Program-made: the position numbers and the translations under genes
The notes under the pieces: model-generated
The model's database searches: none
The model's input: the letters and a program-made list of their open reading frames with translations, nothing else
What the model was told of the DNA's origin: nothing
In this document: in pieces, positions 28,166 through 64,000 of the stretch
How positions within the stretch are numbered: the first letter of the stretch is position 1
Layout: every line of letters begins with the position of its first letter
DNA from: Hamiltosporidium tvaerminnensis FI-OER-3-3
Lineage: Eukaryota; Fungi; Microsporidia
Assembly (NCBI GenBank): GCA_022605425.2
Contig: CM061253.1
Location: 186,001-250,000 of the forward strand
Reading direction: 5' to 3'
DNA: 64,000 nucleotides

Positions 28166-30830
28166 ATTCTCTTTAGATTTTTAATTATTTCTATAAATTT
28201 ACGGGTTGTTATCGATTGAATACAAATTTGTATATGAATGCTAGTAGAAGTTTCTAATTCTTAGATAAACGTACATAACTAAAGGGTTTTTATAAGAGAT
28301 TTATATTAAGACGGTTATTATAGGTTGGTGAGGAGTAAGGGGTGTTAATAGAAAGAGAAATATCAAAAAACATTTTTGCTAGATTTAGAGTTTAGGGAGG
28401 AGTTAGCAGCATATTTGTATTATAAAAGAAGTCTTTAAATTATTAATCTAGAAAATATGACTCGGGTATTCGGCTTGTAAAAAGTATTGGTTAAAGTATC
28501 TTCACTAAGGTAAAAAAAATAATAACTTTCTTCTCGTTAATTACTGCTGATTCATCTCTAAAATTATATCTTTATTTTTACGTAGACAACTTACATATAT
28601 ATAATGGATTGGGGAAGTGGTTTTAACATCGTATGAAAGATATCAATAAGTAAGAATTTCAAATATGTATTATATCGACAGAATAAGCTTCCTCGTATGA
28701 TTAATTTAAAAAAACAAGGATTTTTTTACGTGGAAATTTCTTGTGGAATCATGTGAATCAAAATCAAATTTAAAAATAAATTCTGAAGTAAATGAAAGTT
28801 GGTTGTAAACTTGTTAAAAAAATTTTTTCCGGAATGGTGTGCATTAAAACACGGCGCTTACTGATCTATAAAATACTTCTTATCTATGTAAATATTCTCG
28901 TTATTATCTAAAAATGCAGCATATTTTTTTAATCTGAAATATCTTTGGATTATACAAAGAATACAGCTGAAGACATTTTAAATCTTCTTTGTACAAACTA
29001 TAACATTAAATTCAAAAGTTAATTTAATAAAAGGCATTTATTTTGATTGTAGATATTTGTTTTGCAGTTGTTAACATGTATTATATGTTTAGTATACCTG
29101 GACGAAAATTTTACAAATTGCATTTATGAGTGGTTTTTTACGGGGAAAAGCACATTTATTTATAAAAGATGTGTTATCTTTATAGAAATTTAAATTTTGA
29201 AATTAGTTCTAGAATGATACAGTGTAAATGACGGAATTATGTGTGTTATAGGGAATTAAAGTAGTGTATTGTAATTCATAGATTCGCTCGAAGGTACGAA
29301 AAACTTTTTATCAGTGGAATGACTTTACCAACATACAATAACAAAATTTAATAGCATTGATAATCACTTCATCTAGATTGGATTCACTGCCCTTAAAAGT
29401 GACCAAACATCACATTTAAGACACAATTTTTATTAAATATGCATACAAATGAGACACAGACATGCAATATCCTGTAAAATTTAGAATGTAATGGTTCTTT
29501 TAACTTTGAACTAATTATATAGAGAAGATGTATAAAAAGACATTAAAAGAACTTGCTCGTAGACTAAACTTCCGAATAAAATCAGAAAAACTTATAGTGA
29601 AGCCTAAATTTTATGGACAGGTCATCTTTGTAAGACACTGCCTGCTATTCTAAATTCGAAACTGCCTTATGACTCAGTGCAGATGTCTCAAATAATTAGT
29701 TTTATAGCGATAAGTCATTTATTTAGTTAAGGAAGCCAATATTTGCGTTTTCTTACAAAATAATGCTTCTTTACATGTTTTCAACAACAATATCTAGATA
29801 TTGGGAATAGAAAGATTCGATTGTACAAGGTTACACAAAAAATCATATTCAAAGCAGATTATTTTAAGCCGACACATCTAGAGAATGAATTATTTAGAGG
29901 TTTCTTCTTGAATTACTATAAACATAAAATTAAAGTTATTGCACACTAGCTATATTCTTAGCAGCTATACAAAAAAGATATGTGTGTGCTCTTAGTGTTA
30001 CCTTTACATAGATTAAAAAGGTAAGTGCAGCATATGAGTAAATCGGTACTGAAATGAGATAATAAAAAGTTATTAAACACATACAGAATTTTAATTCAAG
30101 AAATTTATCGGTGTGGGCTTGCCTGTTTTAATTTTCAAGCTGAAAATACACCAATTCTTCTGCGAAAGATTATATAACACGACTTTGTAACTATAAATAC
30201 CTTCGCTTAAAAAAACAATGAAAAATCTCACAGCTTCCAAACCTTTCGGAAGATAAATTTGAGGAGAATATGGCTAAATACGGCTATTCAACTCTTTTAG
30301 ACAAATATACCTTGTGTGTTTCAAATTTAACAGTTTCAGAGCCGACCTTTTTTGCATTAGGCGTTAACAAAGTCAGGAGGTTCGCACCAACGCAAAGAAT
30401 AGATTTTGAAAGCCTGTGCATCTCGCACAAACAACTCTATGTTTTTAGTTTACTTGCAGAAAAAATCTGGATTTATTCGTATAAACATCAAACAAAACAA
30501 AAACATTTTATTTAGAAGGAACTCAAATAAATAATTTTTTTTGCGTTTTTTCGCTTTGAATTTCCTTGAATCAAAGTTCGCAGTGACATATGACGGGACA
30601 ACTAAGAAGTCGATAAAATATAAATTCTAAATAATATTATTATTGTAATAGGCAGATAATACAGTTATATTGGCATTTCTATTTACAAGATAATTTAATT
30701 TTAGAAATTAAATCACTATAAATTATAATATTAAGTCGGAAAGAAGGACATACATCGAAATAACATACAAAAATATTATATTTTTAAGAATTACATGTTA
30801 TTGAATGCATATCTTTTATGATTTAAAAAA

Positions 30831-30938
30831 ACGATACTTTTCTGTAATAGAAAGTATTGTCTTTTACTTGCTACAAAGGTATTATAAAAATATTTAATCT
30901 ATAATTATTCAAGAAATATAAAAATTGTGGTTTTTTTT
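30831..30938. other. Hairpin + AAAATTGTGGTTTT module, unit 1
   Basis: Stem ACGATACTTT/AAAGTATTGT at 30831-30860; TTGTGG at 30925. Confidence 0.75.
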
Positions 30939-31378
30939 CGAAAATATAAAAATATTTCAATACTTTTTTTCTTTTTAGAAAATAAATTTACTTTCTATAA
31001 ATTACTAATAGAAAGAAATTTACAATGAAAATCGAATCAATTTTATATCGTTACTGTTATCTTTTTCGATAAAAACTAGTATTTAGTTATTAATAGGTTA
31101 ATTTTTACTTGTATTCTAATTATTTATATAAATTTTCATTTTCTACTGTAATTAAGGTTATTTGATTATTGTACAGGTTCGTTCAAGTTCTAGATATTCC
31201 GTGGAATAATTGATTTCCAATTAAATTATGTGTATTTGATTATTGTACAGGTTTTCTCAAGTTCTAGTTATTTATATAAATGATTGATTTTAAATTATAC
31301 TACAGTTCCACGTAATTTGATATTATTAAGGAAGACATCTTAAGTATTTTACGTTTTAATAAATCTCACGGCCCTTAA

Positions 31379-34218: not shown

Positions 34219-35060
34219 CGATACTTTTCTGCAATAGAAAGTATTGCTTTTACATAGCTACAAAATTTTAACTTTATTTAAAAGTTTCACATCTTTTTAC
34301 AATAGTGGCAAGTGTTTCATTTGTTTTCATGACATTAACGCAGTTCTAGGTTTAACATAAATAACTGCTACCCCAAAACTCCATCAGTAACCCCTGCGAT
34401 ACCTACGTCCCAAACCCTTTCATCTACCAGATGCGACGAACCTTTTGATAGGCAAGACAATTGCCCAGTATTTGTTAATGTCCGTTTCATGGAACTCGAT
34501 CGATGGCAGAAGCCCTCCGGGCTCATAAGACCGTTAGCCTTCCCACTTACTCTACTCTTTCTGAACCCAATTAACTTCTAGCTAAGATATAACAAGAGAC
34601 TTGGATGGGGTACACTTAGAAAGTGCAATGTGATACCTACGGATATAACCTGCTACTTAGCTTTTGGCTTTAAATGGATTATTTTTATATTATCTCCCAG
34701 GCACTAAGTCTTCTAGCCCGAATGAGCAAGGCTAGGTTTCCATGCCTTTGCATGGCAATTACTTACATGTTTGGATGCGGTCGGAATCTGGTTACATCAA
34801 AAACTGCAAATAACTTTGTAGAAAAAGTTCGCTATTTCTTAGACTTATCCTCTTCATAACAACTCCCATGGAACAACCGGACATGAGCGTGGTTTTACTC
34901 TCAACAAAAATTTAAGAAATGATCCCTCTCACACCAGTTTCACAACTCATTGCCGGCAGAAAGTTTTTTATCTGGTTACCCCTCGCTGCGTACAAAGGTA
35001 ATAAAATAAATATTTATAATAAAAAAAAATATAAAAGACATAAAAATTGTGGTTTTTTTT
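34219..35060. other. Hairpin + AAAATTGTGGTTTT module, unit 2 (split by element copy A)
   Basis: Stem CGATACTTT/AAAGTATTG at 34219-34246; TTGTGG at 35047; spacing is 69 nt once the insertion is removed. Confidence 0.75.
34265..34990 (-). mobile_element. ~726-bp non-coding structured interspersed element, copy A, with 6-bp TSD TACAAA
   Basis: TACAAA at 34259-34264 and 34991-34996. The paralogous empty site GCTACAAAGGTA is at ~30870. Homologous to ~46500-47210 and ~53253-53980. Confidence 0.88.
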
Positions 35061-38000: not shown

Positions 38001-38356
38001 TGAGCTAAAGCTCTAGAAAATAAAAAGAATGTAGAGCGAAAGAGGAAAAAATTGCAGATTAAAAAGATCTTGGATTTATATTTAGAAGTTTTTGCAGACT
38101 GCTAATATATAAATAAAAGACCAAAAACATTTATAAGTAAAACGACAAAGTGCGGGTATAAAACCCCAAATGATAATATAGGCATTGTAACATAGCGAAC
38201 AAAAGTTTAGAAGAATTTTATTTTTATATTTTTCTCTGTTGAATGTAAAATTAAAGTCGCTTCTACGAGCTTAAGACCTCGTAAATGATAGATAGAAAAA
38301 TAACTTATTTCTATAAAAAATATTAAAAAATTGCTAAGAAGTTTGGCGAACAAAAG

Positions 38357-38460
38357 CAAGCTTTTTTCTTGTGGGAAATAATTTGAATTACATCTGGTGA
38401 CATTCATTGCAAAAATATAAAATTTAAATTTTAAAAATATTAAAATTGTGGTTTTTTTTT
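38357..38460. other. Hairpin + motif module, unit 3 (weak stem)
   Basis: TTTCTT-GT-GGGAAA core around 38365-38378; TTGTGG at 38446. Confidence 0.55.
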
Positions 38461-40233
38461 ATCAAATATTTTATTAATTAAATTATATTTCTTGAGCTGA
38501 ACTAAAATTAATAGAAAATTCTATTCATAAAAAATCTATTGATTTCATTCATTCTTTAAATTAACGAAACACAAGAAGATTGCTCTTGGAAATGAATAAT
38601 GATAGATTTTTTTTTGCATAATTTAGATTCGGTCATTATTGTTTCCCATAAATTAAATTTTAAAATATTTAGGATTTCTTTTGAATTATGAGTTGCTATC
38701 AGCAATTTTAAATTAAATAGCGACATTAAAAATATACTTATTGTATGCTAAAGAAAAACATAACTAGAATTCTTAGCTAAGATCAAAAGAAACAATTAAA
38801 ATAAATGTTAATTGAAAGGAGCTATGAAAAAATAATCAAAATACAAATGTAACGATTGAAAAATCATGCAGTGCATATATAGAGGCCTTATCAATATAAT
38901 AAAAGGTTTGAGTATCATAAATTACTCAAATAAAATTGTATTGATATTAAAAAGTAGGTCAAGAATCACTTTTTTTATGAGCTAAACAGATACAAACAAA
39001 TATTACTAAGTGTAGAAATCGGACATGAAGAACTATATCTTGGATTACAGCAGATATACCCGTGATTATAAAAGACTGATTTAAGTTATCGCCTTTATCT
39101 CATGAAAATCTTTTTTTGGCAATAAAAATATTTTGAATAAAATCATTTAAAATATAAAAATCCAAGTTTATAAGTTAAATTAAAATGAAATTTTTTACAA
39201 GAGGTGTAAAAATTCATAATATTGTTTCAAAACCCAGAATATTACTTGAAATTATTTATATTAAAATGCCGGTATGATACGGTTTAATATTCTATTTTAT
39301 AATTGCATAATATAGGAACAACTGAACTTAAACTATATATGTTAGATTAGGAAATGTAAGACACAATAAAAGTGTTCTGATACAAAAGATGGCTGCTATA
39401 AAACGTTCATAAATCCTACATAGCAAATAATATGCGAAAACAAGAATAAAAAATCATTAAAACGTTTGTTCGGTTACAAAAAATTTGAATCTAGATATTT
39501 TAATATCCATTCTTGATTTTTTAATTCATAAATCCTACATATGTATCAATGGTTTTACAGGCTATATTTAAATTCTAAATAAGATTAATGTAATAATTTG
39601 TTAGAATTTTATTTCAAGCCTTTTTTTCTGATAAATGACAATTATATGCCTTTTAATGTTTTATTTCCATTCAAATTGCTGTTAATTCAGCCTTAATAAT
39701 AATTGAACAAAGAAGATATTGTGTAGAACTCTAGATATATTCTTTACCGGAATCTATACAAATAAAAAGGCGATATTTAAACATGAATTATCTAATACAG
39801 CATATCTTTATAAGAACAGGTTTTAATAGAAAATGTGTCGAGGCATACGAATAAATGCCAACGAGAAAAAAAGTCGAAATGCTATACAAAAAATATAGTA
39901 AAATAAATGGAACAAAGAAAATTTAAATGGAAGTTCTCAAAAATGGCAAGCAAGTAAAATAAAACAAAAAAGATCTATAATTTAAATTGAAAAATAACTT
40001 AAGGTAAAGTATGAAAGACTAAAAAATATTGGTGTATATAGATTAGAGGAGATTATATAATTCTTAATAAAATATTTGTAGCAAGGTTCGTAAATGAAGT
40101 TAAGATGAGATCTACATTTTTTTGATTAATATAAGCTTTTAGGCGCTACGGGATTAAACACAGTAAAATAATATAAATATTTGAGTTATTATTAAATATA
40201 TTTACAAATTAAGAAAAAGAAGAACGAAAAATG

Positions 40234-40339
40234 CAATTTATTTCTGAATAAGAAATACATTGGGATTTTCAGATCGAAAGGTGGGCTTTGAAACATATAT
40301 TATATTAAAAAATAAAAAAATATTAAAATTGTGGTTTTT
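40234..40339. other. Hairpin + motif module, unit 4
   Basis: CAATTTATTTCT-GAATA-AGAAATACATTG at 40234-40262; TTGTGG at 40329. Confidence 0.75.
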
Positions 40340-43300
40340 AATCGAAATTTTTTAATTATTTAGATTAAATTTCTTTATTTCGTTTCAAATAGAAAATAGT
40401 GTGAAAAAAAAACACAAAAGTCTATATATATTTGTTTGATAGATCAAACAAAACAAAGGGAAATCTTGTCAAAAACAAAGAGTTGAAAATGTTTCATTTA
40501 AATGAATTATCTATGATAAAATCATTTTTATTTATTTAATTGCCAGATTTCGTTTACATATTTCTCTTTAAATTTCAATTGAACATATCTGCGAAATAAT
40601 GGCAAAAATACACGGAGAAAATCATTTTAGCATTTCAAAGATTAATATAGATAGAAATTTACTATTGGAACTCGGAAATAATCAATTAAAAATAATTTAG
40701 ATAAAACTTGATCCGAGATCACATCAAAAAATACACATACAGCGGTTCGGGAATTTAAATACATATACAGAAATATCTCAAAATGATTATAGCCGGAAGT
40801 CTTAATATATTTTATTAAAATTGTTTTGATAGCAAAAAGAGACTTAGAAACACTCTTTTTCCATACCACAACAAATTCATATGAAAATACTTTAATTCTA
40901 GCAATACGGGTTTAAACCTATTTTTAAGATCAGTTAAACCTCTGCGATTCTTATAGACGCAATATTAAGATTTGTGTTTTTCTTTTCAGATGGAGACAGG
41001 ATACCACAAGCAAACAAAGTGCTCGGTCTTAGGAGTTTATAATTGTATAAAAATCAAATTGAATCTAGTGGAATAAATCTACAGCGGATATATGGATTAA
41101 GCCTCTATAATTCCGAGTTACAAACCATAAACAGAAAAAAAAGGAAATCTTTTGTCTTTGTATCCTCGAAACAAGAGTTAAACAAAAATGTAATAAGTAA
41201 GCAATGCCTTTAAATACCTAAGTATACATTCCAGTTCTCATAAATCTCTGGGTTTTGTAGCTGAACAGATAGAATAAACATTTAGTCGCTAGTAAATGTC
41301 ATAAAATTTCGCGGAGATATTCATCTAAACGAAAGGTCGGTTTTTGAGGAAATAAATTAGTTTCAAAGTCAATAGTTTTTCTATTTTATAACAAAAACAC
41401 CAAGTATTTATGCATCGTATTTCATATTCTATATTTTAGGCTTGGTCATAGCTTTTTAAAAAAATCCTGTATTTTTCTTTTAATATATTGTAATTCGAGT
41501 TTACAGTTTATGAGTCATAGATCGTATGACTTGTTTTCCAAAAAACCTTGAAATTCTGATTTACGAATTGATTTTACACATCGATCCTCAGGCAAATAGT
41601 ATTTAATTTCGTAATTCTATCGGTTAGCTGTGTTTCTATAGACTTTTTCAAAACTTCTAATCTCATTAATGAAAGAGAAACATTAGAATTATTGATTCAA
41701 TGAAAAATATAATTAGTTTTTCTTAAAAAAGTATTTTACGGATGTTTTAAGTTTAAAAGTTTTAAAGAAAGTCTAAAATTAGATTAATAAATCAAATTAA
41801 TGTTATTTACTATTAGAAATATTTTATTCTTCAGTTAAAAATTTTTTATAATTTTTACTGTTTTTCATTGATTATATTCCCACTAGTATATTTTCAAGAA
41901 GATTGAACCTAAATTCTTTATAAAATTTCTATTTGTAATTTTTTAATTGAAAGTTTTTTTATATTTTTTTACAGATCGATTGAGTGTTTTTGACTCTATA
42001 AAAAGCCAATTATTTGCTCTCCCATTACTTTTTGTGTTATAAAAGGTACTAAATTCTAATAAAAAATAAACAACATTACAAAAAAAATAAAACGAAATCG
42101 ACAAAGAATTTACTTATAATAAATACAAACATAACCTAAATTTATATAGCTGCCTGCCACAATTTTTTCCTTTACTTCTTTAAAAAAATCTTGTACAAAT
42201 AATAAATATCAAGCAAGCAAATAAAGAGAAAAAAAGCCGAAAACAAAATACAAAAGAAAGATAAGAAGAAATAAAAATAAAACTTCTTAAAATATAATCC
42301 GTTCTTTACAACCATATGTGATTTTCTTCATGATTTTATTTCGAAAAAAAATCCATAGAAATATATATATACGACCGATAAGATGCGTGGATTAAAATAA
42401 AACCAGGATTTGAGTTCAAAAGAACCAAGATAGCTATTTATTTTTTTCTTTATATTACAAATTCATGATAAAATACTCTATAGTTCTATCTTTTTTGTAT
42501 AATTTATTTAACCTTTCTATTTTATTTTCGTATATACAAAAATATTTGCTATAAAACAAATTATCGTAACGAGCCAGATGCGAGAAATATCCGAACCGCT
42601 ATACCGGGTCATATTTCACGACCCTCATTCCACAGCAAAGTTTTCTTTAGAGCAAAATGTTAAAAAATGGATTTTTTCACAAATGCTGCGACTTTATTTT
42701 TAAGAATTCACTGATTAAAAAAATTATAAATGATTTAAGAATCTTTGTTAATATTTCAGCACAATTTAAAGTTTCGAAGAAATCTTAAAAAGACAAAGTT
42801 TAAATGTTAAATAATCATATATTTATTTTAAAAATTTGAGAAATTAAACTTTATCTGTAACAATCCTTATATAGAAAGTAACATCTGAAAGTTCGCAATT
42901 TATATGCATTACGACCAAATAGGCTTAAAGTTTTCTATAAAAACCAATATCGATTTCTTCTATATTTCATCTACCATTCCAATGTTCATTACAAAATAAA
43001 AAAACAATACTTATTTCACAATTTACAACACCGAGGTTTCAAGTCTCCCAGAAAACCATATTTTGCATCTGCCCATGGATAATTTAATCTTACGAACAGA
43101 GAATTGGTGTTTCATTGTAATAAAAATCATTTCGCTCCTTATCTAAATATGTCGAAATAACGGCTTTAGTTAAAAGAAATTTGATAAAATCTATCTAAAG
43201 AACCAAAACTACAGGTATGGATTTAAGAACGAAACTATCATAAGTACATCGTAAATGCAACCAGATATATAAATTATGCCAAAATAAACACGATATATGC

Positions 43301-43702
43301 TTAAAGACTATAGAATTTACTTTTTTTAAAAATTATAATTTTGCCTTAATAATTTCATAATTTTACTTTTGAAATATATTAGGTACCGTAAATCACTACT
43401 TTTTTAAATATTCTTTATTCACCAAAGCTTATTATATAAAAAAAATCATAGGTGTAAATTATTCCATTACTAGAGAACCTTAATAAGCTCACATATATAA
43501 GGAATTTTTATTTCAGCAGCTAGGCGAGAGATTGGTAAATTTTATTTAGCAGGTTATAAAAAGCAAATGTCTACACCGTCTTAGAGTTCATGAATAGATA
43601 GAAATCTGGAGACAAATACATAGAATACGCATTGAAAAAAAAAGTTATCCTAAAAAATGATAATTTAAGATTCGATTGTTAGGACGTAGAAGAATAAAAT
43701 GA

Positions 43703-43803
43703 AATTTTTCGTATAAACAGAAAAATTGCAATTCTTAGCTATAAGATATTCGGCGTGGATATATAAGTAAAAAATATATTAAATATATTAAAATAGTGGT
43801 TTT
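43703..43803. other. Hairpin + motif module, unit 5 (variant TAGTGG)
   Basis: AATTTTTC/GAAAAATT at 43703-43727; AAAATAGTGGTTTT with core at 43794. Confidence 0.7.
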
Positions 43804-45066
43804 GTAAAAAAAATTAATTTAGTATTTTTTTAATTTGATTAAATATAGAATAAAACGATCAAATTTAGAAAAAAATGTAAAAATTCGAAAATTAAGTTTT
43901 TTTATGTAATATTTATCTTTACATGATGCAATACTTTTCGATTCGATTTACTTCTTTTTCTAACGCTTCTTAATTTTATGAATCAACGTATTTCATCATA
44001 GCGGAAAATATCGCGTACAAAATATTTTAAGCATTTGGAGTGAGAATATAATTGAACCTGCGGGTTTATGAAAAGGCTTTCTTATACGTGAAAATACCAT
44101 ATTTGACACGAATTACATACTTTAAAATCAAATAAAATACATCGGTAGTTGCGAAAATTTTTATTCAAAAAATTAAATTAGTGTCATATAAGAAATCTTT
44201 GGCTTTTTAATGAGATAAAATGGAAGTTTTTTTTATTGCAAATCTTTCTAATCAGAACTATACTTTTTGAATAGCTGACATTAATTATCTAAAAAAACAT
44301 ATTTTAGATAATTAAGAAACTTACGTGGTGCTTATTTACTTGCATGGTATTAGAACGCATAGTACAAACATAAGAGCACTTTTTGATATGTAAAACATCA
44401 GATCCTAAGAGTTATATCTTTATAATGGCACCATTTCGATATAAAATCCAAAATTAAGTAATTCATATAATGAAGTTTTCTCTAAGATTATGTAGTTTAA
44501 TATACTATTACGATTCATTAAAATAATTTCTAGTATAACATTTATTTTTTAAATATAGGAAACTTAAATATAAAGCAAAAGAAGTTCTATTAATCTTTTA
44601 ATTAAAAAAGGTAATTTTCACAAAGTTTAGTACAAATAAAATATATCAATATGTACATTTCTCTGATAATACCGAAGTTTTTCTGATCCTAAAATTAATC
44701 GAGTTACATTAAATAAATTAAAAATCCAAGTAGATGATTCAAATCTATTAGGGATTGTGATTAGGTATAGTGGTTTTCGCAATTCATTGTTCTTCGGATA
44801 AATTATAGCAAAACCGTTATAAAAAGAGTCGCAAGCCGAATCTTGGTTTTCTTATATATTTTTGTTCTTAATGAGGACTTGGAAACCATTGAATTTTACC
44901 ATATAGATGCAAACTTAACACATCTTCTTTAAAAAGTTATAAATGATTGAAACTGAAAAAACAACAACTTAAAAAAACATATAAAGAATTATAAGTACAA
45001 GAATGATGAAACTTTTATACGTGAAGGAAAGAGTAGAAGTACATAGAGAAATAAAGTAAAGAAAAA

Positions 45067-45172
45067 GATGAGTTGATCTTAAAGAAGAATAACTTATCAT
45101 TTACGACAAACGGTTGATTCTAAGTAAATTAATATAAAATTAATTATGAAAATAAAAAAGTTGTGGTTTTTT
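45067..45172. other. Hairpin + motif module, unit 6
   Basis: GATGAGTT...AACTTATC at 45067-45098; AAGTTGTGGTTTT with core at 45161. Confidence 0.75.
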
Positions 45173-46499
45173 CAAAAAAAATATTGCCTAGATTTTATTT
45201 TTCTTCGATAAAAGAAACCAAGTATTTTGTGAAATAAACCGTAACTTTTATTAAAATTATAAGAGTTGTATAAATTATAAAAATATTTTAATGAAACTAT
45301 TTTGGCAGTCTTTGGCTTTTCAGGATATTCTAAAAATTTTATTTTTTAAATAAGTATTAATAATTTGTCGATTTGTTACTGTCAAAGCATTTATTATATT
45401 ATTTTCGATGCATTATATTCTGTTATCTTGATTGATTGTGGTTTAATTAACCGAATTGTTGCTCGTTTTAAATATTTTCAGTTTACAGTAAAGAGATACA
45501 GGCATTGAAGTTAAGTAGAGGTATTCTTATATTTCTACTCAGAAATACATACTGCTCGAAAACATATTGATTTGAATCCCTAAATTCAAAAAAAGAAGAG
45601 GAAAACCAAATCTTATAGTTATTTATAGTTTGGTTATGCATTTATTTTTATATGTAAGTGTATTTAATTTGTTATGATTGCATACTTACAGAACATAAAC
45701 ATTTCTTCCGCAATAAAACCTTTAAAAAGGGTTAGCACACCTTGTAAGATCTCTCTATCGTAGATTAAGATTTACTGTTTTTTATAAATAACGAAATCGG
45801 TAATCTTTTACGAATTTTTGTTTTATTTATATTAAAAATATTCTAATATACTATTTTAACCAAAGAAGCAGCTTATTAAAAAGTTTAACGTATATTCAAG
45901 CCACTTTTGTTTTGCATTTTTAGTTGTATATCTAAGAAAAAATGCATTTCATTTAGAAATTCATTTAGTTACAAAGAAAGTAAGATCTGGATATTTGTTC
46001 ATTTTAGGATAAAAACATTTAGCAAACCCTTCAATGTGTTTACAATATATAAACCTGGTATATTCATTAAAGAAGGAATTCATTTTATGTACATATGAAA
46101 ACGGTGAATTATTGTAAGAATACAGATTAGTTGGATTGTGTATGGTAAATAGAAGTAAAATATTTTAGATATCATGGTAAAAATTAGTTTGTATATTTTT
46201 GTTATAGTCTGATTCAAAAATAGTTTATGAATATAATAGACATGTAGTTAGAATGAGTATAACCAAAGTAAAGACTTTCGGGTTGGAGAATGAGTGTATT
46301 GAAAGAGGAGTGAGATCTTTGTTGCCTTTGTGAGGAATATAAGTTACACTGGATCTATAGACCAATCTCCGATAATACCGAGTCAAAACAGAGTAAAATA
46401 GACAAATAAAAAACTTCTATTTGTTTATACTTGACAGCGAAGGGTAAAAATGGTCTTGAATAACTAGGTAAGTAAGTAAGTTAATATAAAGTATATTTA

Positions 46500-47210: not shown

Positions 47211-47243
47211 TGTAAAACACGCCTTTAATAATCAAAAAGAGCA

Positions 47244-47346
47244 TACTTTCATGTAAAGAAAGTACATCTTTTAAATATCCAACAAGGTATGAATAAAAAT
47301 ATTTATAATAAAAATAAATTAAAATATATAAAAATTGTGGTTTTTT
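47244..47346. other. Hairpin + motif module, unit 7
   Basis: TACTTTC/GAAAGTA at 47244-47264; TTGTGG at 47335; flanks homologous to unit 2. Confidence 0.75.
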
Positions 47347-48641
47347 AAGGAAAATATTTTTTAGATTATATTCTTTTTTTTGTAAAAATGTAAATTTATT
47401 TTCTGTAAAATACTAATTAAAAAAATTTATATAAAAAAGAATCGGTTTGATATTGTACTTCTTACTTTTTTTTACTTTAGACGTATACATTCGTTAATGA
47501 TTAGGTTATTTTTTAATTAAGTTAAATGTATTTTAAAAATGATTTTCTAATTATATAAAGGTATTTAGTTATGGTATATGTTACTCAAGTTCTATTAGTT
47601 TATACAGATGACTATATCTAAAAATATTACAGTTATAAAGTAATTCGATATTTTTATGAAGGAACTATCAAAGTTCTTATGTTTCAATAAGTATAATTAG
47701 GAAGTAAAAATAATGTTTTAGGTGTTAATGTTAGATCAAAGTTTATGTGAAATTTAAGGAGAAACAAAGTTGTCAGGTTAAAAATATATAAAAAAAATGC
47801 AAACTATAGACAGAGTATCTTTGATAAATATGAAAGACTGATATGTTTTTAAAATGCATCAACCTTCTAAAATTCAAGATTTTCGATAATTTAAGTCAAA
47901 TAAAAAAATAATGAGATGGCCAAAATGAGCTAAATAAAGTTGAAATTTATTAACGATAACAGTGATCTGGACCCAGTGATAACCACATAATTATTTTTTT
48001 AAATATCTTTAAAAACCTACAAGTTTAAGGAAATTTTACAACTTTTTACATTTTATATGAAGTAAAAAAAACATATCATTTTCCGATTTTTTTTTGAAAA
48101 CTTTTTTTACTTAAGATGAAAGAGCAAATATTATCAAACAATATCTTTCTACGTATTGAAGTTAGAATATAGAAAGCCTCATAGCTACTTAAATCAAAAA
48201 TATTTTTACATATTTTATAAGAATTATTGAATATCTTAGAAGAAATTTTTTGTTTGTACCGACCTAGAAAGGTAGATGCATTTGACCAAGTAATTCATGT
48301 AAAAGCAATTCTATACTCTGGAATAAATAAATAAAAAGAAAAAAATCGTATCACTACATAAGCGAAAGTTTATTCAGTTTTATATGCAATAAAATATATT
48401 AGAAACACATGAATTGAAATATCGCAATTTAATACTAAATATTCCGGAAAATAAATATATATTTCTGAAATATACCATTGTTTTTTATTTTTATTTTAAG
48501 AATTCTAAATTAAATCTCTAGTTCTACAAATAAATTATTTTGAAAAAGTCAAAAAACAGGAAAAGTAATTACATACATTCAATAAAGAATTATATACCAA
48601 TCAGAAAATATAAAAAAAAGATATAAATAAGTAAAAAGTAA

Positions 48642-49985
48642 AAAAAAGGTTTCTCTTGGTATAGAAGAACCCCTTTTTTGCTAGCTGTAGTGTATTTTTA
48701 AAGATTTTATTTAATAAAATTCTGGGTTAAAATATTTTTTACCATTTTTACATGTTTTCTTCTACCTCTTTGACCACTTTTGTCTCTTCTTCCAAATCCG
48801 ACTCTTCATTTATGTTATTGGTGGTTCCTCTGTGGTTCCTCCTTGTAAATAAAGGGGGCTTTATATTTTGGTTTAAATTTTTGGCACCATCTTCCTCTGT
48901 TTTCGCTTCTTTTAAAGGGGGTATTGGTTCCTCTGCATCTCTGATCTCTATAACACCCATTGACGCCTCTCCCAGCTCTCTTGGCATTTAGTCCTGACTC
49001 AGTCCTCTTCGTCGATCAAGGATAGTTTCGACTGTCTTTTTAGTACTATAGACTGAATGTATGCTTCTACATTCATGGGTATTTTAGTCTTTTAAGATGG
49101 ATTTATGGTATTTTGTCACAATACCGTCCCGGTCATCACATAGGGATTATCTCAACACTACACTTATAAATAAGGCCCACTCATTGGTGGGTCATACTTC
49201 TGTTTTCGTTTCACTATTTGAGTGAATCTTGGGTGATTCCTACTTATGGTGTTATCTTTTTTCTTCTTATCTAAAATAAATATGTCGGTCTGTTTTCAAT
49301 TTTAAATCGTTTTATTTGGTGTCCACTCTTATTCTGCTACTCATTTCAGAATTTCTTGAACTGAGTGGCTCCTTATTCGTTTTGAAGACTTAAACTTATA
49401 TCTATTTAGAGGGAAGGTGTGGCATCTAACCACTTCATTATGCCGTTAGTGTAATCATGGCCTGCATTTTTTCACATCTAGTTGCTAGATGATCCACAGT
49501 CTTACCGACTTCCCGCAATGTTGACACACACCATCTGCTCCCCGAATAATTTCTATCCTGGATATAGGAACACGCTTCATTTCGTGGCCTATATTTCCTC
49601 TCTTTAGCCATCTTGGTCACTACACTCCGCTCATTTTTTGCATTATATAACTTTGAATGGGTTTTCGTTTTTATTTCGTTATATAGTTTTGGTTGAGCTT
49701 TTCTAAACTTTTCTTAGTGACTTCTTCTACCAACCTGTACTTACTTTTAAGAAGCCTTTTATTAGTGCAAGATGGGTTTTTTATTTTCTCCCCTTGAGGA
49801 TTGCTGCTCGTTGTTGATATTTCTTTATTTTTCCGCATCCGGTTGAAGCATATGTTCGCTTCGCAACTCAACACTATGTGGCCTCTTCCAAGTTCTGTTC
49901 TGGGTTAAACGCTCTTTCTCTGGAGGTGTATTTTTAAATATATTTATATAAAAATAAATAAATTGAAATTGAAGTTGTGGTTTTT
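48642..49985. other. Hairpin + motif module, unit 8 (split by the LINE insertion)
   Basis: AAAAAAGGTTTCT...AGAACCCCTTTTTT at 48642-48679; AAGTTGTGGTTTTT with core at 49975; spacing is ~60 nt once the insertion is removed. Confidence 0.75.
48703..49925 (-). mobile_element. 5'-truncated non-LTR retrotransposon with C-terminal CCHC knuckle and restriction-like endonuclease (REL; R2/R4/NeSL-type), 13-bp TSD
   Basis: Fragments HSVELRSEHML, RNEA...IQDRN, CQHC..TVDHLATRCEKM..HDY and EAYIQSIVLKKTVETI. GTGTATTTTTAAA is duplicated at 48690-48702 and 49926-49938. AATAAA sits at the element's 3' end. Confidence 0.9.
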
Positions 49986-52477
49986 CGAATCAAAAAAATT
50001 TTAATTTAATTCAATTCTACATAGATTGAAAGAAAACAACAACTAAAACTATCTGCTTAGCATTGAATTAATAAAATGGTGTGCGGATCATTGTTGACAT
50101 TTTGTTAGATATAACCCATACTTGATTTATAAAGCCTTTCTCCATAATCATGAATTATAACAGATTAAAAGGAATAAATTGAAAATAATTCACTCTTCAC
50201 AATCAAAGACCGGACGATAAATCAAACCATTCATGTTTAACGTAAAAGTAATTAATTTGATTGGGAAAATAGAAAGAACTGAGCTTTGAACTCGTTTGAA
50301 TCTTTATATCGAGATTTTTTTCAGAGAGAAATAAATCCAGAAACACTAAAAGATACACCAACTCATAATATCTAAGGACCAAGTGCTTCATCTTACACAT
50401 AGAGGCAATAGCCGAGTGGAATATGTAAGAACGTTAAGTACATGTATAACGATTTTTTTTAACAATATATATTATTCTTAGTAATACAATATAGTTTGTT
50501 GTTTAACATTTTATATTCAGTTACCGCAAGTTTAAACATATTTTTAACGAATAAATTGTAAAAATCATAACAATATTAAAATTTATATTTTTTTATAGTT
50601 TTATTGCATTTTTGGTTTGATTTTGAGACATTAAGTAGCATTTCAGTCTATATTTGTGTACTGAGTTCCAAATTTAATTAATTACTTAAAAATTAATCTA
50701 AAAATTATCGATACTTATTTGATGAACAATATAGATTTTGGTCCATTTTTAGTGAAGAATACGTTATTTTGTTGTTTTACATTTCTTTTATTTCACTCAG
50801 TATAAGAAATTATCAATACCGCTTAATCTAAGTTCAATATTTAAACATTCAAATAAATCTTCTTTTGTTTCATTATAAAATTTCATGTTCGTGTTATTTT
50901 TATCTTATAAAAATATCAAAATCAGCAGACGAATGTACATTTGACTTTTCTTCTTTTATATTTCTCTTATCTTTATATTAAGATTGGCTCTTTTATCACC
51001 TATAAATTCTTTTAATCATACCTAGACATGTTACAGAGGTTATCCCCAAATTATATCTGTATATAGATTTCTAATTAAAAGAGTATGTTCTTGGTCTAGT
51101 TTGTCTCTAATTCTTTATGATTAGCGATTTCTTTTCTTACTTAAAGAATCCCAGTATATAGTATATATTAATATACTAAAAATAGGAATCAAATTTAAAA
51201 ATTCTTTTGGATGAACTTTTTTTCGATATTTTTACATTGACGCTTATATTTTTGTCTCGTATAATTAAAATTTAAGTTTGATTTTTAGATCATTTATAAA
51301 GAATAAAAACAATAGATTGTAAAATCAGTAATAGATTAAAAAAATATTACAGATTATCAAAATATAGAAACGTTTGCCTTAGTATTTTTGTAAGATGACT
51401 TTTTTAAATACAGTCTTATTTTTTTATGTATTTAGATCTAAAGAAATTAGTTAAATTATATTTCTAAATATTTTTAAACCATTATACTGTATTATATAAT
51501 CTATTCATCTTAACAAGACGGCGAATCATCTTCTAGTGTGTATATGATATGAAATGTAAGAGCTAGGTAAAGTTTATAGATTAACAATATGAATTATTTA
51601 CTTTTTTCCTTTTAAAAACAAAACTACTAATAATGGGCAGAATACAACATAAATCAATTTAAGAATTTTAATGAAAAAATATTTAAACTAACTTTTTTTC
51701 GATATCTTTTCTATAGTATAGTGCATTTAATATAAGCAATAAAGAATATAGATTCGATTTTTTTAATTTTTTTTTTAACTAATTATTTTAAAAGTACGAT
51801 TCAATTTTTAAAATTTATAATTTTTTTAAGTTATTTTAAAATAGTTGAAACATAGTAAATTTGAAGCTATGTTTGAAGGCCATTTTTCATTAATACTATA
51901 TGTATTCAAATAATAATTCAACAAAAAAAAATCTTTAGACTAATATAATTGAAATATTATCAAAACCAGTCTAAAAAAACCTGAATTGAAAATACTAAGA
52001 AAATTTCGAGCAGTTATTAGCTTATATAGCAAACGTTATTCAAGCGATACAAATGAATAGCTGCATACGAGAAAGTGAACGAGATGTAATAAAAATAAGA
52101 GGTAAAACAATTCACAATACACAAAAAATGCGGAACTAAAACCGCTGCAAAAGCAAATCCAAGTAGATATGAAGGGTATAATTACAGTTAAAACAGAGAC
52201 ATGTAATTGAATAAAAAAATATTACGAACAGAACATAAGTTCGGATATTAAATACAAAAACACATGAAAGAAAACGGAAGTAGTGGGTTTATATATCCTC
52301 AATTGGAATATTAAGAAATTTGCTTAAAATAGCAAATTTAACAAAAAAATTCAGCTCTGTTTTTGAGTTTTTCATTATATGAAAAATAAAGATCGTTTAC
52401 ACAGGTTTAGATTGGTTACACAATAAATGAGGAGACAAATTATTAAAGCTAGGATACTAATAAATATGTAAAACAGT

Positions 52478-52580
52478 CATACTTCTCGTAACAGAAATAT
52501 GCCTTATTTTACCTCTAGGGTATCTCGTCTGAAAAAATTTAAAGTACAAAGGCGTAGAAAATGTTAAAATTGTGGTTTTT
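52478..52580. other. Hairpin + motif module, unit 9
   Basis: CATACTTCT-CGTAAC-AGAAATATG at 52478-52501; TTGTGG at 52570. Confidence 0.72.
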
Positions 52581-53252
52581 AATTTAATAATGTTTTTTGA
52601 CAATATATTTTTTTTATTTGTTTTAATATAAAGATAATAAGGTTTCAGAATTAAAGAAAGATTCTATCAGATTATATAACAGTAACCAAGGAAATATTAT
52701 AACAAAAAAGAAAATAGAATGTTTTTTGGGAATTTTAAAGATCCGGCTATTTTTCTTCAGATTTAATTATATGTTGTTATGTATCAATTTCTTAGTAGAT
52801 TATGATTTGATTTGCAAAAATAGACATGCTAGTAGTGACATTATAGAAATAATTTTCCTATTTGTGAAGGGAATAGAAACAGAATTTTTTTATGAACAAT
52901 AAAAGACATGTATTTTACAGAACAATTGGAGGTTTAGATTGATTACGAGGAAACATTAAAGATGGTAAATGAAGCGATTCTTAAATTATATAGCGCATAT
53001 ATAAAAACATTTTGTAAGTTCTAAAAATTTCAGTATTTAAATATCAAAAATTTAATGTCTTATTTTATTAAACCTCGGCTTTGACTATTCTTTTTCATCA
53101 CCTAATAAATTCATATACAAACATGTTGATTGTAGCATGTAGTATAAAAAGTTTTATCTAGGATTACTGCAGATACACCGGAGATTCTTATAAGAATGAT
53201 TAGCATAATCGTGTTTTTCCCTTTAAGATAATATAAATTATTGTAATAAGAA

Positions 53253-56900: not shown

Positions 56901-58641
56901 ATATTTTAAGAAGAGCAAAATATATGATTTTTTTGTACAAATAAAAAAGCTGTATATCTTTAACCGGTTAATTTCTGTTAAAATTATATTAAGCGCAAGA
57001 AATACCTACATGTAATATATTTTATTTAATTTTATTAACCGCAAGAAATACTTACATGCAATATATTACATTTAATTTTCTTAATTCCATTTACAGAACA
57101 TACTTCGTTGGCAACCAGCTTGTTTAAAATTTGATATTTCGAAAGGTATAGCGTATATGAAATATTTTGCACAACTAATATTATGCTAGAAAGACCTTTG
57201 AACCTCTTAAAACGTAACTAAAAAAGGCCTTCACGGTATTTAATACCAAAGAAAAATATTTCTGAAACTCTTATATGCTTATAGAAAAAACCGAACACAC
57301 TAAAAAGCAGTAAGCCAATGATTCACCTCCTCAACCTGATTATTAATCCTTTTAATAGTTTAAATAAGTTATATAAAGACAATTCAATTAGTTTCGCGAA
57401 ACTAAAACATATATATCATAAAATTCAAGCATTATAATTATATTTCAATCTATAGAATGCCTGAAATAATGAGTCAGAATCATTAATAATTCTCGAAATG
57501 AATTAACAGTATAAACTTAATTCATTTTAATAAAAGGACCTTTTTTCATCCAACATTTAATGTATTTTTATATACAGAAGAAATTTCAGGAGATTTAAAT
57601 ACTTATAGAGACCAAGTTTCCATCTGGTTGTCTTATCGTTAAAAAATACTAGGTTATAAACATACTTCGAATTGAAGTGAATGCTCTTGGTTTACATATA
57701 AATATTATCAATACATGTAGTTCCAATTATTCAAAGCCTTTTGGAAGCTTTAATTTCATACGTATTCGAAATTATTATTTTTAATAGAAGTCAACATAAG
57801 AATTAAACAAAGGTAAAAATAAATAATAATAAGTTAAGTTTTTTCATTCTATTCTTGAAACCTAAACACTGTATATTTCTCAAGGGTTGAAGGACCTAGA
57901 ATGCAATGTCAGAAAAATTGGGATGAACTCCAGGAAAATATGAATCATTTTCCTACAATGAGGGCTGAGTTATATGTTTAACGTAGAGACAATTCAATAT
58001 TGGATAAATCAAGCTGACATTACCATGAAAATACTATTAAATACCCTTTATGAGGGTTTATATATTTGAAGAGTAGAGAGATATACTGCATAAAATTGTT
58101 CAAAAAAGTTTTCCTATAGATTTTGCTGACTAAAAAAAACGGTTTAACGAGAAAAATTCAAAAAAGTCTTTTTTTTAGGATGACATACAAAACAGCATTG
58201 AGATGGAAATACTCATAACCTCACTGCATATAAAAGTCAATGACATAGATAGTGTCAATAAAATCAATAAAAAGATTTATGTAGAAAAATTTGAATTGAA
58301 TAACCAAAATCGAAGTATTGACTCTGAATTTATCTTTAACCTCAAATATTTGCATGACTAAAATAAAAAAAACAATGAGTAAGATAAACCAAATGAAAAC
58401 AAGAAGAAAAAATATCAATGTTTTGTAATTTTTTTCTAGGACTAAACCAAATTTTTTTGTGATTTCCGACTCTATACATATTTGCTTATACATGGAAATT
58501 TATAATAATGATATACATTTTATTTGAAAAAATTTATATTTAAATTTTGTAAATCTAAACAAGAATCTTCAATGAATATAAATCTTTTGTTATATTTATA
58601 AATGCCTTTAAAGTATGAAGCGGTTTCGAAATTAAAAAGTA

Positions 58642-58744
58642 ATCCTTTTCTATAGATAGAAAGGATCATTTTTATCTGTGTACTGGGCCTCTGTATAAAT
58701 ATTTATAAAAAAAATAAATTAAAAACGACTAAAATTGTGGTTTT
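58642..58744. other. Hairpin + motif module, unit 10
   Basis: ATCCTTTTCTAT-AG-ATAGAAAGGAT at 58642-58666; TTGTGG at 58735. Confidence 0.75.
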
Positions 58745-60099
58745 CAGATTAAATTTTTTGAAATATTTGATTCTAGATTATACGTTTAAAAATATAGAAA
58801 TTTTCTTAGAAAAATCTAAAATGTAATTTATATAATAATAAATTTCAAAAATATTAAATAACTATACTAGGAATAATTTTTATTTGATATGTGTCTATAT
58901 GTTTTAGTGTTATTACAATAGTATTTAACACTCTTCTTGTTTTTCATATCTGAATAATCTACGAATAATTAAAGTGAGTTGCATATTGCTATTGTTACAA
59001 AAACGAAGGATTCTTGTGTTTAGAAGCAAGAATATTTGGCCCAATGATTTTTTATACAAAAATATATTTAACGTTATTTACCGAAATATGTTCCTAAAAA
59101 AGACAGTATTTGATATATTCTAAGTGTAGTCCACAAAGTCTTTCTAATATGAATGAATATTAGGAAAACCTAAAAGAAACCGTTTTTTTTACTTAAAATA
59201 ATTTATTTCAAAGACATATATATTTAATCAATCAGACCTAATCATAGTTTTAATATAAAAGACAATTCTTCTAAAAAACTATGAATTTTATACAAAAATT
59301 TGATCTAAAAATAATACAGAGCTTAAAACAGGTATGTATAGGTAATACAGATATGGATTTAAATTACTCCGAACAAAGGTGAATTTTGATAACATAAATT
59401 TTGAAAAGTAGACGGTCTTAGAATTTTTTGTAATAAGTAAATGAAATTCAATATTTTAAGAACCCATTCATGTATTTTTTGCGACCCTTTTATTATTTAG
59501 AATGATAACGCACGCAATGAAAATAAGGTTTATAGTTTTGAGTTATAAATTGAAAAAATATAAAATGCATACAAATATTTAAAAAAATTTGATATGCTTT
59601 TAATCCTTTAGTTATTCTAAAGAATCTTATACTGATCTTTCCAATAATTTTCATGTATATGATTAAAAGGGTGGTGAGTGTAAAACATATTAAAAACTAT
59701 CTGGTTGGCAATGAGAGGTTTAAAATTTTTGAAAATATTTTTTGAAATTTTGGTGGGTTATAAACCTGATTAGATCTACAAGACAATCCTCTATGCACCC
59801 GATTCACAAAAGATTCAAAGAAGCAATTAGAAAATTTCTATTTGTTCATCCTCGAAACCGAGAGGTAAAAGATGAATCGAATAAGTAAATAATTATACAG
59901 GTTGAAAATGACGGTTGTTTCGAATATTTCTAAAAAACCCGACTTACGAAATGATGTTCTACACTAATTTATATTATTTAAATATAAAAACACATAAATT
60001 ACATGTGTTTGTATAAGAGAATTTAAAAACAGAGAAACATAATTTTTTCGTTTAATAAGATTTTATGAGTTTTTTCGAATCATTTGAATGCTAAATTAT

Positions 60100-61850: not shown

Positions 61851-62522
61851 ATCCTCGACACTACAGCCTTGCACGCACTTTGGACTCTCTTAGTAATGCT
61901 GCCCTCCGGTATCTTTCCAGTGCGTTCTTTTACTTTTTTAGGTTTCTTAAGAAGGTGTTTTAAAGGAAGGATCTTAGCTCTACGCCCAACCTGAAGATTA
62001 GTCCCTTTTAGTCGGTTCTTACGGCAAGCAGCGAAATCTCCAAGCCAATTCTGCATCCGGCAGAGCGAATAAACTAATACGAATCATGTAATGATATCCA
62101 GTATATTCGTGTGTAGTTTATATCACACAGATTATATATGAGAGATTTTCGGACCAAAATAAAACATTATTACCATACAACAAGCAGATAACTAAAGAAG
62201 GTGGAAAAGTAATTCAGAGTGTTTATAAAAGGGTTTTGAGTAAATTCATCATGCTTTTGGTTTATTATAACAAAAGAAGGTTCTATTTAAAGGTGTTGAT
62301 TGGTAACGCTGATTTACTCTATATATTCTTTTTTTTCAAGAGCACGTAGAAATGATCAAAATGTTATGATATAGATTCTAGACGATAGAATTCTCTCTAT
62401 AATAATTATAAATAGCTGTAAAAAAATTCAAAAAACATATTTAATAAGAATTAATACATAAAATAAATTATTATTATAAGTTATAAAACAATACAAGCGC
62501 ATAAAGTACCATTGAAACAAAA

Positions 62523-62627
62523 GATAAAGTTACTATAAATAAGAGTAACTTAATCATTGCGACAAACGGTGAATCGCAATACAATTTGTTATAAAATTTA
62601 ATTAAAAATTATTAAAGTTGTGGTTTT
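62523..62627. other. Hairpin + motif module, unit 11
   Basis: GATAAAGTTACT/AGTAACTTAATC at 62523-62555; second stem ATTGCGA/TCGCAAT at 62556-62580; AAGTTGTGGTTTT with core at 62618. Confidence 0.78.
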
Positions 62628-64000
62628 CTGTAAAAAAATATTTTTTTGGATTTTAGTATTCTTAATAAAGGTAACCGAATATTCAAGTAAAATAAAAAAA
62701 TTTACGTTACACATGTTCTAAAGGTTGTATTAAATATTAAAATGTAGTAATGAAACTTTTTAGGTATTCTTTTACTATTAAGAGTATTTTTTCTAGCAAA
62801 TTTGCTTTATATAGCAAAAAACCCATCATTGAAAATTTTTGTATTCAAAACATCCAAAATAATTTTTAGATGCTTTGTTTTCTGTTATTTGTTAAAATTT
62901 TAGTTAAATGACCGAGTATTTTGTCTTTGGTCTAGGTTTTCGGTCTAGGGTAACGAACTCGAGTATTGTATTATTTATTGGATTTTCTTACTACTCCCTA
63001 TAAAAAATCGTTCTAGAAATGATTTTTAAGGAACCCAAAGTTCGAAATAAAAGAAATAAACTGTACTATTGGTATATTTTTTCGATTATTCCTTATTGAT
63101 AATGCTATCGAATTTAGATATATATTTAATATACCTATAAAACATCAAGGCCTGTTGTTCACTAAAACTTTATACAAACTTTAGCAAGATTTTCAGTTTT
63201 CTCTGATCTTCCTGCCTAAGATTTTACGCTTTATTTTACATTTATGGATTCTTCTTTAATTAAAGTTTTAAATAATTCAACTGTAGTTTTTACTCTAAAA
63301 AATCGGATTCTTTGATAAATTTAACACTTTTATCAGAACTTGTTTTTGAATTTTTTATAATATCATAGGCTAAATTAATGGCATTTGAGAATTAAAATTT
63401 TTCCGAAAAAATCTTTGTATAGATTTGGTTTAAATTCGTTAGAAAAATATTAAATTAGTAGTTTAAAATCTTAAAAGAAATAATTACGGCCCTTTCCTTT
63501 AAAGAATAAATTCATTTACTTTATATAAAATATAGCATTATCGCCTCAATAAAAATGAGCTGATTATGCAGGCATATAGAAATCCGAGTTTTAGACCACA
63601 TAATTAAAAATTAGTTTGTATATCTCTTATTTAAATTTTACTTAAGAATAAATATTATTGAAGCAATGCATATATAAATAGAAGCTAGATAAAATGCAAA
63701 AGTACATAATCGTGTCAATGCAAAAATAAATCGATATCCGAATAGAAATGATGTGGCTAATACTTTGAAATCTACAATAAATATAATAACGTCATGGTTT
63801 TTGTTTAAAGAATATTACTTTTAAAAATTGGTATAATTAAAGAGATTCGAGTTTTTTTTGGAGTATTATTTTTAGCTTTTTTAAATAATTACTATAAGCA
63901 TATTAATCCTACGGCACTTTGGTTTTGGAAATCGGTTTTGGTCTCGAAACAATCATTTATTTCTTTCCACATTGTACAAAAATTTTAATTATCCACTAAA

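Follow-up and report, generated by a model that had tools for sequence, protein, structure and literature searches.

A co-oriented array of candidate type 3 RNA polymerase III genes for small hairpin RNAs in the microsporidian Hamiltosporidium tvaerminnensis

Type 3 promoters of RNA polymerase III (Pol III), which drive the U6, 7SK and MRP RNA genes of animals and the U6, U3, 7SL and MRP RNA genes of plants, combine an upstream element at a set distance from the start with an intervening TATA-like box, and transcription from them ends at the first T run. The upstream element, termed proximal sequence element (PSE) in animals and upstream sequence element (USE) in plants, serves both Pol II and Pol III. 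The small Pol III RNAs known as Y RNAs and nematode stem-bulge RNAs come from multi-copy, partly clustered genes with type 3 promoters; they end in a 3' U tail, and their 5' and 3' ends pair into a terminal bulged stem. In the Drosophila MRP RNA gene, 23 nt separate the PSE from the TATA box downstream of it, and the TATA box is in turn ~16 nt from the start (PMC1796607), and the Dictyostelium upstream sequence element (DUSE) also serves both polymerases (PMC7919456). For microsporidia, the genes for U6, RNase P and signal recognition particle (SRP) RNA yielded nothing beyond a TATA box and CCC/GGG motifs in a comparative study, which saw no A or B boxes (PMC5499648). Here, we analysed a 64,000-nt stretch of the microsporidian Hamiltosporidium tvaerminnensis (contig 8 (C8), positions 186001-250000; hereafter the window, with coordinates lacking a contig prefix given as window positions), which contains an array of co-oriented units that are probably minus-strand type 3 Pol III genes for ~55-nt hairpin RNAs.

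Among described systems, the nearest as a whole is that of the Class I RNAs of dictyostelids, which were reported from Dictyostelia only. These are ~60-nt RNAs from tens of partly clustered genes that expanded by duplication; they carry a DUSE of the form [AT]CCCA[AT]AA ~60 nt before the start (with two Cs only in some dictyostelids), downstream T runs that suggest Pol III transcription, and a stem conserved in structure but not in sequence next to a variable internal region (PMC7919456, PMC3188802). The Hamiltosporidium units resemble them in RNA size, gene number, clustering, upstream element, T runs and a stem conserved only in structure. In contrast, the Class I stem pairs the 5' end with the 3' end, whereas the hairpin of the units is local and 3'-terminal, and Class I RNAs have an 11-nt motif beside the 5' stem, whereas the units have no motif common to all members (a loosely similar CCUUUGUAGC(A/U)A occurs in units 1 and 2 only). 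Likewise, AACCACAA matches the DUSE at six of eight positions and lies ~50 rather than ~60 nt upstream, which is a resemblance only. Because fold and motif differ, we regard Class I as an analogous design and claim neither homology nor membership. Compared with type 3 promoters in general, the units show the same fixed element distance, TATA-like box and T-run termination, one element serves the U6, MRP and SRP RNA genes here, and the geometry is close to that of the Drosophila MRP promoter. What differs is the sequence of the element, which is lineage-specific and placed at -54 to -42, and its absence from the Pol II snRNA (small nuclear RNA) genes of Hamiltosporidium. Unlike Y and stem-bulge RNAs, the predicted unit RNAs have no end-to-end stem, and they matched no Rfam family.

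Unit layout and the promoter element of U6, SRP and MRP RNA genes

The motif AARTWGTGGTTTT was found 11 times in the window, always on the plus strand, compared to 0.02 occurrences expected from dinucleotide shuffles. This confirmed the position and strand of every copy in an earlier note on this DNA, which had described 11 co-oriented units, each with a hairpin at a set distance upstream of a motif core. In a scan widened to the window plus 50 kb of the same contig (114 kb), the relaxed core T[AT]GTGGTTT was present 20 times on the plus strand and never on the minus strand. The hairpin spacing was also reproduced: on the plus strand the hairpin ends 63-69 nt before the core and, read in the minus sense, hairpin and T run are in fixed register in 12 of the 15 intact units. 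The A-rich spacer that had been placed between hairpin and core is indeed present and, read on the minus strand, contains a TATA-like box, while the A run preceding the hairpin on the plus strand becomes a minus-strand T-run terminator at a set distance.

Read 5' to 3' on the minus strand, a unit thus consists of a PSE-like element (AAAACCACAATTT), a T/A-rich spacer of ~25 nt, a TATA-like box with the consensus ATAAATAT and, ~10 nt past this box, a CC-rich start region that frequently reads ACC(U)UU, corresponding to the CCC-type start motif of microsporidia. These are followed by ~20 variable nt, a hairpin of 9-12 bp with an inner part tending toward UUUCU...AGAAA, 0-5 nt, and a run of four to eight Ts (T4-T8). 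AAACCAC is invariant in all 15 aligned units. The TATA-like box (columns 42-51 of the unit alignment) has a mean identity of 0.65 versus a baseline of 0.35; because the genome is AT-rich, it is weaker evidence than the PSE. The following features, all on the minus strand, were assigned in the window (CM, covariance model score; z, folding of the predicted RNA relative to shuffled sequences):

30818..30937, minus strand: unit 1, complete module; CM 71.7 bits
30922..30934, minus strand: PSE-like element AAAACCACAATTT of unit 1, the reverse complement of the motif in the earlier note; the identical 13-mer is found at U6
30882..30897, minus strand: TATA-like box of unit 1; family consensus ATAAATAT
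30825..30880, minus strand: predicted RNA of unit 1 (~56 nt), start near ACC, hairpin at 30834-30857, T7 at 30825-30831; z -2.42
34972..35059, minus strand: unit 2, promoter and first ~9 nt of the RNA, severed by a ~720-bp insertion; CM 49.7 bits
34215..34269, minus strand: unit 2, rest of the RNA (hairpin, T run); layout nearly identical to unit 1
38343..38458, minus strand: unit 3, promoter intact, hairpin weak, possibly decayed; CM 75.5 bits; z +0.23
40219..40341, minus strand: unit 4, complete module; CM 69.9 bits; z -1.98
43687..43806, minus strand: unit 5, with PSE variant AAAACCACTATTT, possibly decayed; CM 69.4 bits; first TTTT at +24
45054..45173, minus strand: unit 6, complete module with mismatched stem; CM 66 bits; z -1.41
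47226..47347, minus strand: unit 7, complete module; CM 72.2 bits; z -3.36
49910..49987, minus strand: unit 8, promoter, split from the RNA body by a retrotransposon fragment; CM 33.9 bits
48640..48699, minus strand: unit 8, rest of the RNA (hairpin, T8)
52461..52582, minus strand: unit 9, complete module; CM 82.1 bits; z -2.52
58626..58747, minus strand: unit 10, complete module; CM 90 bits; z -1.71
62510..62630, minus strand: unit 11, complete module; CM 73 bits; z -2.75

Searching the genome (21,638,905 bases on 17 contigs, given with the prefix C) for the 13-mer returned 40 copies versus 32 for the reversed control; one strand of C8:216-287 kb accounts for 14 of the 40, and the remainder corresponds to background level. 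One outside copy, at C12:1091760, has the same A/T-rich surroundings and, in the opposite sense, leads into a full-length U6 snRNA gene (C12:1091599-1091718; Rfam 63.5 bits, E 5e-15), the sole bona fide U6 gene in the genome. On the U6 strand, AAAACCACAATTT occupies positions -54 to -42 and is followed by a TATA-like box, and the RNA begins in a C-rich patch. By our own estimate from the 40 genome copies, the probability of finding the 13-mer at U6 in this position and orientation by chance is ~1e-4. A simple rule, in which the start is the first C of CCAC plus 50 and the end is the first T4, reproduces the exact 120-nt U6 RNA. The units and U6 have in common the identical 13-nt element, its spacing, CCUUUGU in the start region and a 3' hairpin immediately followed by the T run; in contrast, the units are half the length of U6 and lack its entire core (ACAGAGA, AGC). 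U6 pseudogenes were rejected as an identity for the units: a search with RF00026 at E values up to 10 gave no match in C8:216-287 kb, and cmscan of the window gave none.

Shortened or variant forms of the element were found at two further genes. The SRP RNA gene (C2:85891-86041, minus strand, partial model match) is preceded on the same strand by the 9-mer AAACCACAA at C2:86130-86138; by the +50 rule, the SRP RNA would start 44 nt ahead of the partial match, in line with the shortened Alu domain of microsporidian SRP RNA (PMC5499648). The RNase MRP RNA gene has the variant AAACCACGG (C1:1345710-1345720) and a TATA-like box at nearly the U6 distance. In both cases, the element lies ~50-55 nt before the start. 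Upstream of the U1, U2, U4, U5 and RNase P genes the element was not found, and only a TATA-like box and a CCC patch are present. Because the reverse complement of the motif is the promoter element of the U6, SRP and MRP RNA genes, each unit is most likely a tiny Pol III gene, and the identity of the promoter is the strong part of this interpretation. Among the options raised in the earlier note, a start-site motif of minus-strand non-coding RNAs (ncRNAs) came closest, but the motif is not the start site itself: it stands ~50 nt ahead of the start, as an upstream element of the promoter.

Transcription of U6, SRP and MRP RNA genes in microsporidia had so far been unclear, and a common snRNA-type upstream element provides a concrete and testable promoter model as well as a simple way to locate Pol III genes in AT-rich microsporidian genomes. 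In the literature consulted, neither such an upstream element nor such an RNA family was found described for microsporidia. When metagenomes were scanned for the element at 80-105 nt before the U6 core, a single GC-rich eukaryotic contig (Ga0115005_10089351) was returned, with AAAACCACAA ~61 nt before its U6 gene; this single match in an unrelated contig is within chance, and its position recalls the DUSE and the plant USE.

Predicted hairpin RNAs and extent of the family

Applied to the array, the rule predicts RNAs of 50-61 nt for 14 of the 15 intact units, in which the first TTTT begins 46-57 nt after the predicted start, compared to a background of 9.2% (binomial p = 4e-14). The predicted RNAs fold more stably than their shuffles (z < -1.4 in 13/15, mean ~ -2.5), with the stem confined to the 3' half and the 5' ~20 nt either unpaired or forming a separate mini-hairpin. 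Aligned by the model, 22 copies have 69.8% of their stem cells paired, versus 53.3% in shuffles, and the stem covariation score reaches 0.384 versus 0.166 in shuffles, none of 500 of which attained the observed score; controls with the stem slid along the alignment gave 0.08-0.14. Retention of stem pairing despite sequence change, as proposed from the letters alone, was therefore recovered, as was the weakness of the unit 3 stem.

Conservation along the 15 units is uneven. The element (mean pairwise identity 0.92) and the T run (0.83) are the best conserved parts, followed by the TATA box (0.65) and the spacer (0.64); the stem arms reach 0.41-0.46, and the RNA's 5' half, at 0.35, equals the unaligned baseline (0.354). 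With high identity in promoter and T run, a random 5' half and pairing retained, selection appears to spare the 5' sequence of the RNA and to act on promoter, stem pairing and terminator, and the divergence everywhere else indicates that many copies are probably kept by selection. This bears out the view that motif, spacing and structure rather than protein are under selection. A DNA sequencing run from a strain ~1% diverged covered the stretch evenly and showed no difference in unit 1, where there are too few sites for this to be meaningful.

A covariance model (R1), built with a hand-set structure, identified 18 copies in C8:216818-286872, all on the minus strand, including the two interrupted units and one copy missed by the motif search. 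The co-orientation of the array described previously thus stands, but its membership grows from 11 to 18 and extends beyond the window to C8:286872. The same genome search, which the note had proposed, also returned ~8-10 dispersed loci (C4:203632, C3:719081, C1:1693083, C5:289380, C13:942735, C5:301017, C15:616248 and C1:792739), whose promoter layout is the same and whose RNAs are predicted at 51-68 nt; the array is found only on contig 8, and the other members are single and dispersed. A tRNA scan and Rfam searches of the window (at gathering thresholds and E values up to 10) gave no match at the units, nor did Rfam at E values up to 1 on ten dispersed loci. The hairpin RNA family, with ~26 candidate genes, has most likely not been described before. 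Calling the element itself undescribed was only partly right: a promoter composed of PSE and TATA box (type 3) is of a known kind, but the RNA family matches no Rfam model.

Paralogy past ~120 nt, claimed previously for about 1 kb around the units, exists within subfamilies (units 1, 2 and 7; units 6 and 11 with C8:271633-271752; unit 10 with C8:262460-262579) but not elsewhere, where unit pairs have only the ~120-nt module in common. Such module-only similarity between most units is expected from an old tandem duplication followed by free divergence. Two units are interrupted by insertions flanked by target-site duplications. In unit 2, a ~720-bp non-coding repeat (about 34270-34978) is inserted ~9 nt past the predicted start, with TTTGTA duplicated at both junctions; in unit 8, a 5'-truncated fragment of a non-LTR (long terminal repeat) retrotransposon (48699-49896) sits at the start, with ~10 nt duplicated, and a fuller copy of this retrotransposon elsewhere adjoins a reverse-transcriptase ORF (open reading frame; RVT_1). 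When the insertions are removed, both units regain the normal layout.

These repeats recur elsewhere near the units. The ~720-bp repeat is present at 34270-34978, 46572-47205 and 53265-53974 as well as outside the window, within or a few hundred bases from several units and 30 nt beyond the terminator of unit 7; the first bases of the copy in unit 2 contain GGGTAACCA, which is likewise found in the U6 5' stem-loop. A non-LTR retrotransposon 3' end (...CCCAGAATTTTATTAAATAAAA), of which the genome has 622 copies, lies in the same orientation upstream of the PSE at C5:289380 (4 nt), at U6 (11 nt) and at C15:616248 (~25 nt), and also at the start of unit 8. Retrotransposon ends near PSEs may reflect a mild integration preference for Pol III promoters, analogous to that of Dictyostelium TRE or yeast Ty3.

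In the mechanism we propose, AAAACCAC(A/T)A(T/C)TT at ~54 to 42 nt upstream of the start would act as a gene-external snRNA-type promoter element, together with the TATA-like box ATAAATAT ~25 nt after it and a start at a CC-rich spot typical of microsporidia. The transcript would comprise ~20 unconstrained nt and a 9-12 bp hairpin and would end at the first run of at least four Ts, so that the product, ~50-60 nt long, would carry a 3' hairpin plus U tail. Tandem duplication would have given rise to the 18 co-oriented copies, which then diverged to random identity except in promoter, stem pairing and terminator. We infer three steps: transcription of the units by Pol III, recognition of the element by a SNAPc-like factor, and accumulation of the RNAs. 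As for function, the weakest step, our guess is a stable small ribonucleoprotein of the La/Lsm type, in which the hairpin would be the protein-binding part of a regulatory or structural RNA by analogy to dictyostelid Class I. A long shot is that the ~26 RNAs are lineage-specific programmable guides or decoys, in which the 3' hairpin would be a protein handle and the ~20-nt 5' tail the specificity segment, directed from an expandable tandem array against the retroelements crowding the genome or against host transcripts. Guides to rRNA or snRNAs were rejected on the targets compared: against SSU (small subunit) rDNA plus ~1.5 kb downstream, U1, U2, U4, U5, U6, RNase P, MRP and 257 kb of local DNA, neither the 5' 26 nt nor the RNAs in full gave matches above chance, the best being 10 nt and 15 nt. 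The promoter rule yields ~26 candidate small hairpin RNA genes without a known relative, 18 of them in one 70-kb array resembling a gene desert. If expressed, they would add a new and abundant class of RNA to a parasite lineage whose non-coding RNA set is considered minimal, and would form a striking parallel to the dictyostelid Class I RNAs.

Evidence against the Pol III reading and rival explanations

Several observations weigh against the units being functional Pol III genes. The layout of the SRP promoter is drawn from coordinates alone, and the 9-mer is not enriched genome-wide (792 copies versus 841 in the control), so that the promoter claim depends on context. The alignment used for covariation was fitted to the covariance model and hence leans toward structure, and RNAalifold on a plain MAFFT alignment returned no consensus structure, because the stems are out of register there. 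A weak stem or an internal T run marks units 3, 5 and 6 as well as the copy at C8:260571-260687; in unit 5, a T5 run within the stem would terminate transcription early. Together with the splitting of units 2 and 8, these copies indicate that part of the array may be dead. Three RNA sequencing runs deposited under the same species label contained no reads of the organism, even on RPS3A, and are hence uninformative on expression of the units. Regarding the factor that would read the element, a 326-aa ORF (C1:704243-705223) matched Pfam SNAPC3 with 26 bits at a cut-off of 23.8; this borderline match covers only the C-terminal zinc-finger end, the ORF has no sequence match to any solved SNAPC3 chain in the PDB, and SNAPC1 was not found in the genome by Pfam. 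An Atlas search with the ORF gave generic zinc ribbons only, and the sole sequence homologue found is its H. magnivora orthologue. A SNAPc-like reader is thus plausible, though tentatively so.

The leading rival is that the units are dead relics: tandem duplication of one small-RNA gene of the Pol III type, or of a fragment of the U6 promoter, would have left copies whose seemingly conserved parts have simply not yet decayed. It is in line with the retroelement insertions that broke units 2 and 8, with the weak stems or internal T run of units 3, 5 and 6, and with the repeat-rich, nearly ORF-less 70 kb around them. Decay should, however, be even along the module, but PSE (0.92) and T run (0.83) far exceed the 0.35 of the RNA 5' half and flanks. 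In addition, stem pairing survives changes on both sides, and the first T4 is held to a 12-nt window in 14 of 15 units. We therefore consider it unlikely that the units are relics.

Less likely still is an array acting at the DNA level, in which sites bound by SNAPc, TFIIIB and Pol III would serve as a chromatin boundary, condensin-loading site or centromere-like landmark, with the transcript as a by-product. Pol III gene clusters act as boundaries in fission yeast. Eighteen co-oriented promoters within a 70-kb ORF-poor zone and an unconstrained RNA 5' half would suit such a role, and no centromere has been located in any microsporidian genome, this one included (PMC12449221). In contrast, covariation in the hairpin speaks for a constraint on the transcript, and a landmark required on each chromosome should recur, whereas there is a single array on contig 8. 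The related proposal of an origin, centromere or recombination site was accordingly not supported.

It is very improbable that the promoter-like module was carried or made by a transposon and that its copies are transposon ends rather than genes. The non-LTR retrotransposon 3' end 4-25 nt upstream of the PSE at U6 and two dispersed units, and the ~720-bp repeat near several units, would fit such an origin. However, the distance and the intervening sequence between retroelement end and PSE vary by locus, the word AAACCAC occurs within 30 nt at only 3 of the 622 element ends, and the array units have no common element-like termini and keep to one orientation and one locus, as tandem duplication predicts.

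In this species, the poly(A) signal is A[A/U]UAAA ~20 nt before the 3' end (PMC10542269). A plus-strand poly(A) site, in which the motif would be a GU/U-rich downstream element, the A-rich spacer would supply AAUAAA and the hairpin would lie in the 3' untranslated region of a long ncRNA or decayed coding transcript, was another option of the earlier note and is scarcely credible: A[A/U]UAAA-type hexamers are present in the spacer of many units, but the plus strand has no ORF or common upstream body, the A run is accounted for as a minus-strand T-run terminator at a set distance, and in the opposite sense, in which a poly(A) site would be meaningless, U6 is preceded by the identical element and SRP RNA by the 9-mer.

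The gene-poor zone and neighbouring genes

The units lie in a zone of ~70 kb that is repeat-rich and nearly ORF-less. In the extended stretch, ~30-101 kb is almost without ORFs of at least 100 aa under the standard code, whereas the first 30 kb of the window have normal ORFs and genes. In 36 kb of the array zone there are three ORFs of at least 80 aa, and none is common to different units, confirming under the standard code that the zone has no shared ORF. Another genetic code was rejected as the cause of ORF scarcity: codes that reassign TAA/TAG open all frames alike, and because the standard code works in the first 30 kb, the scarcity is not a genetic-code artefact.

Next to the array, the eS1 (RPS3A) gene (26533-27273, minus strand) has a short intron (GTAAGT...TTTTAG) directly 3' of its ATG, and its protein is 98% identical to the Hamiltosporidium magnivora counterpart in a search with the second exon alone. 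A CCACAA at RPS3A was dismissed as a -50 element, as it sits 10-15 nt before the ATG and represents a start-proximal CCC-type motif unrelated to that element. Further upstream in the window, three successive ORFs at 16695-17915 (minus strand), one with a SWIM zinc finger, resemble the remnant of a frameshifted MULE-type transposase.

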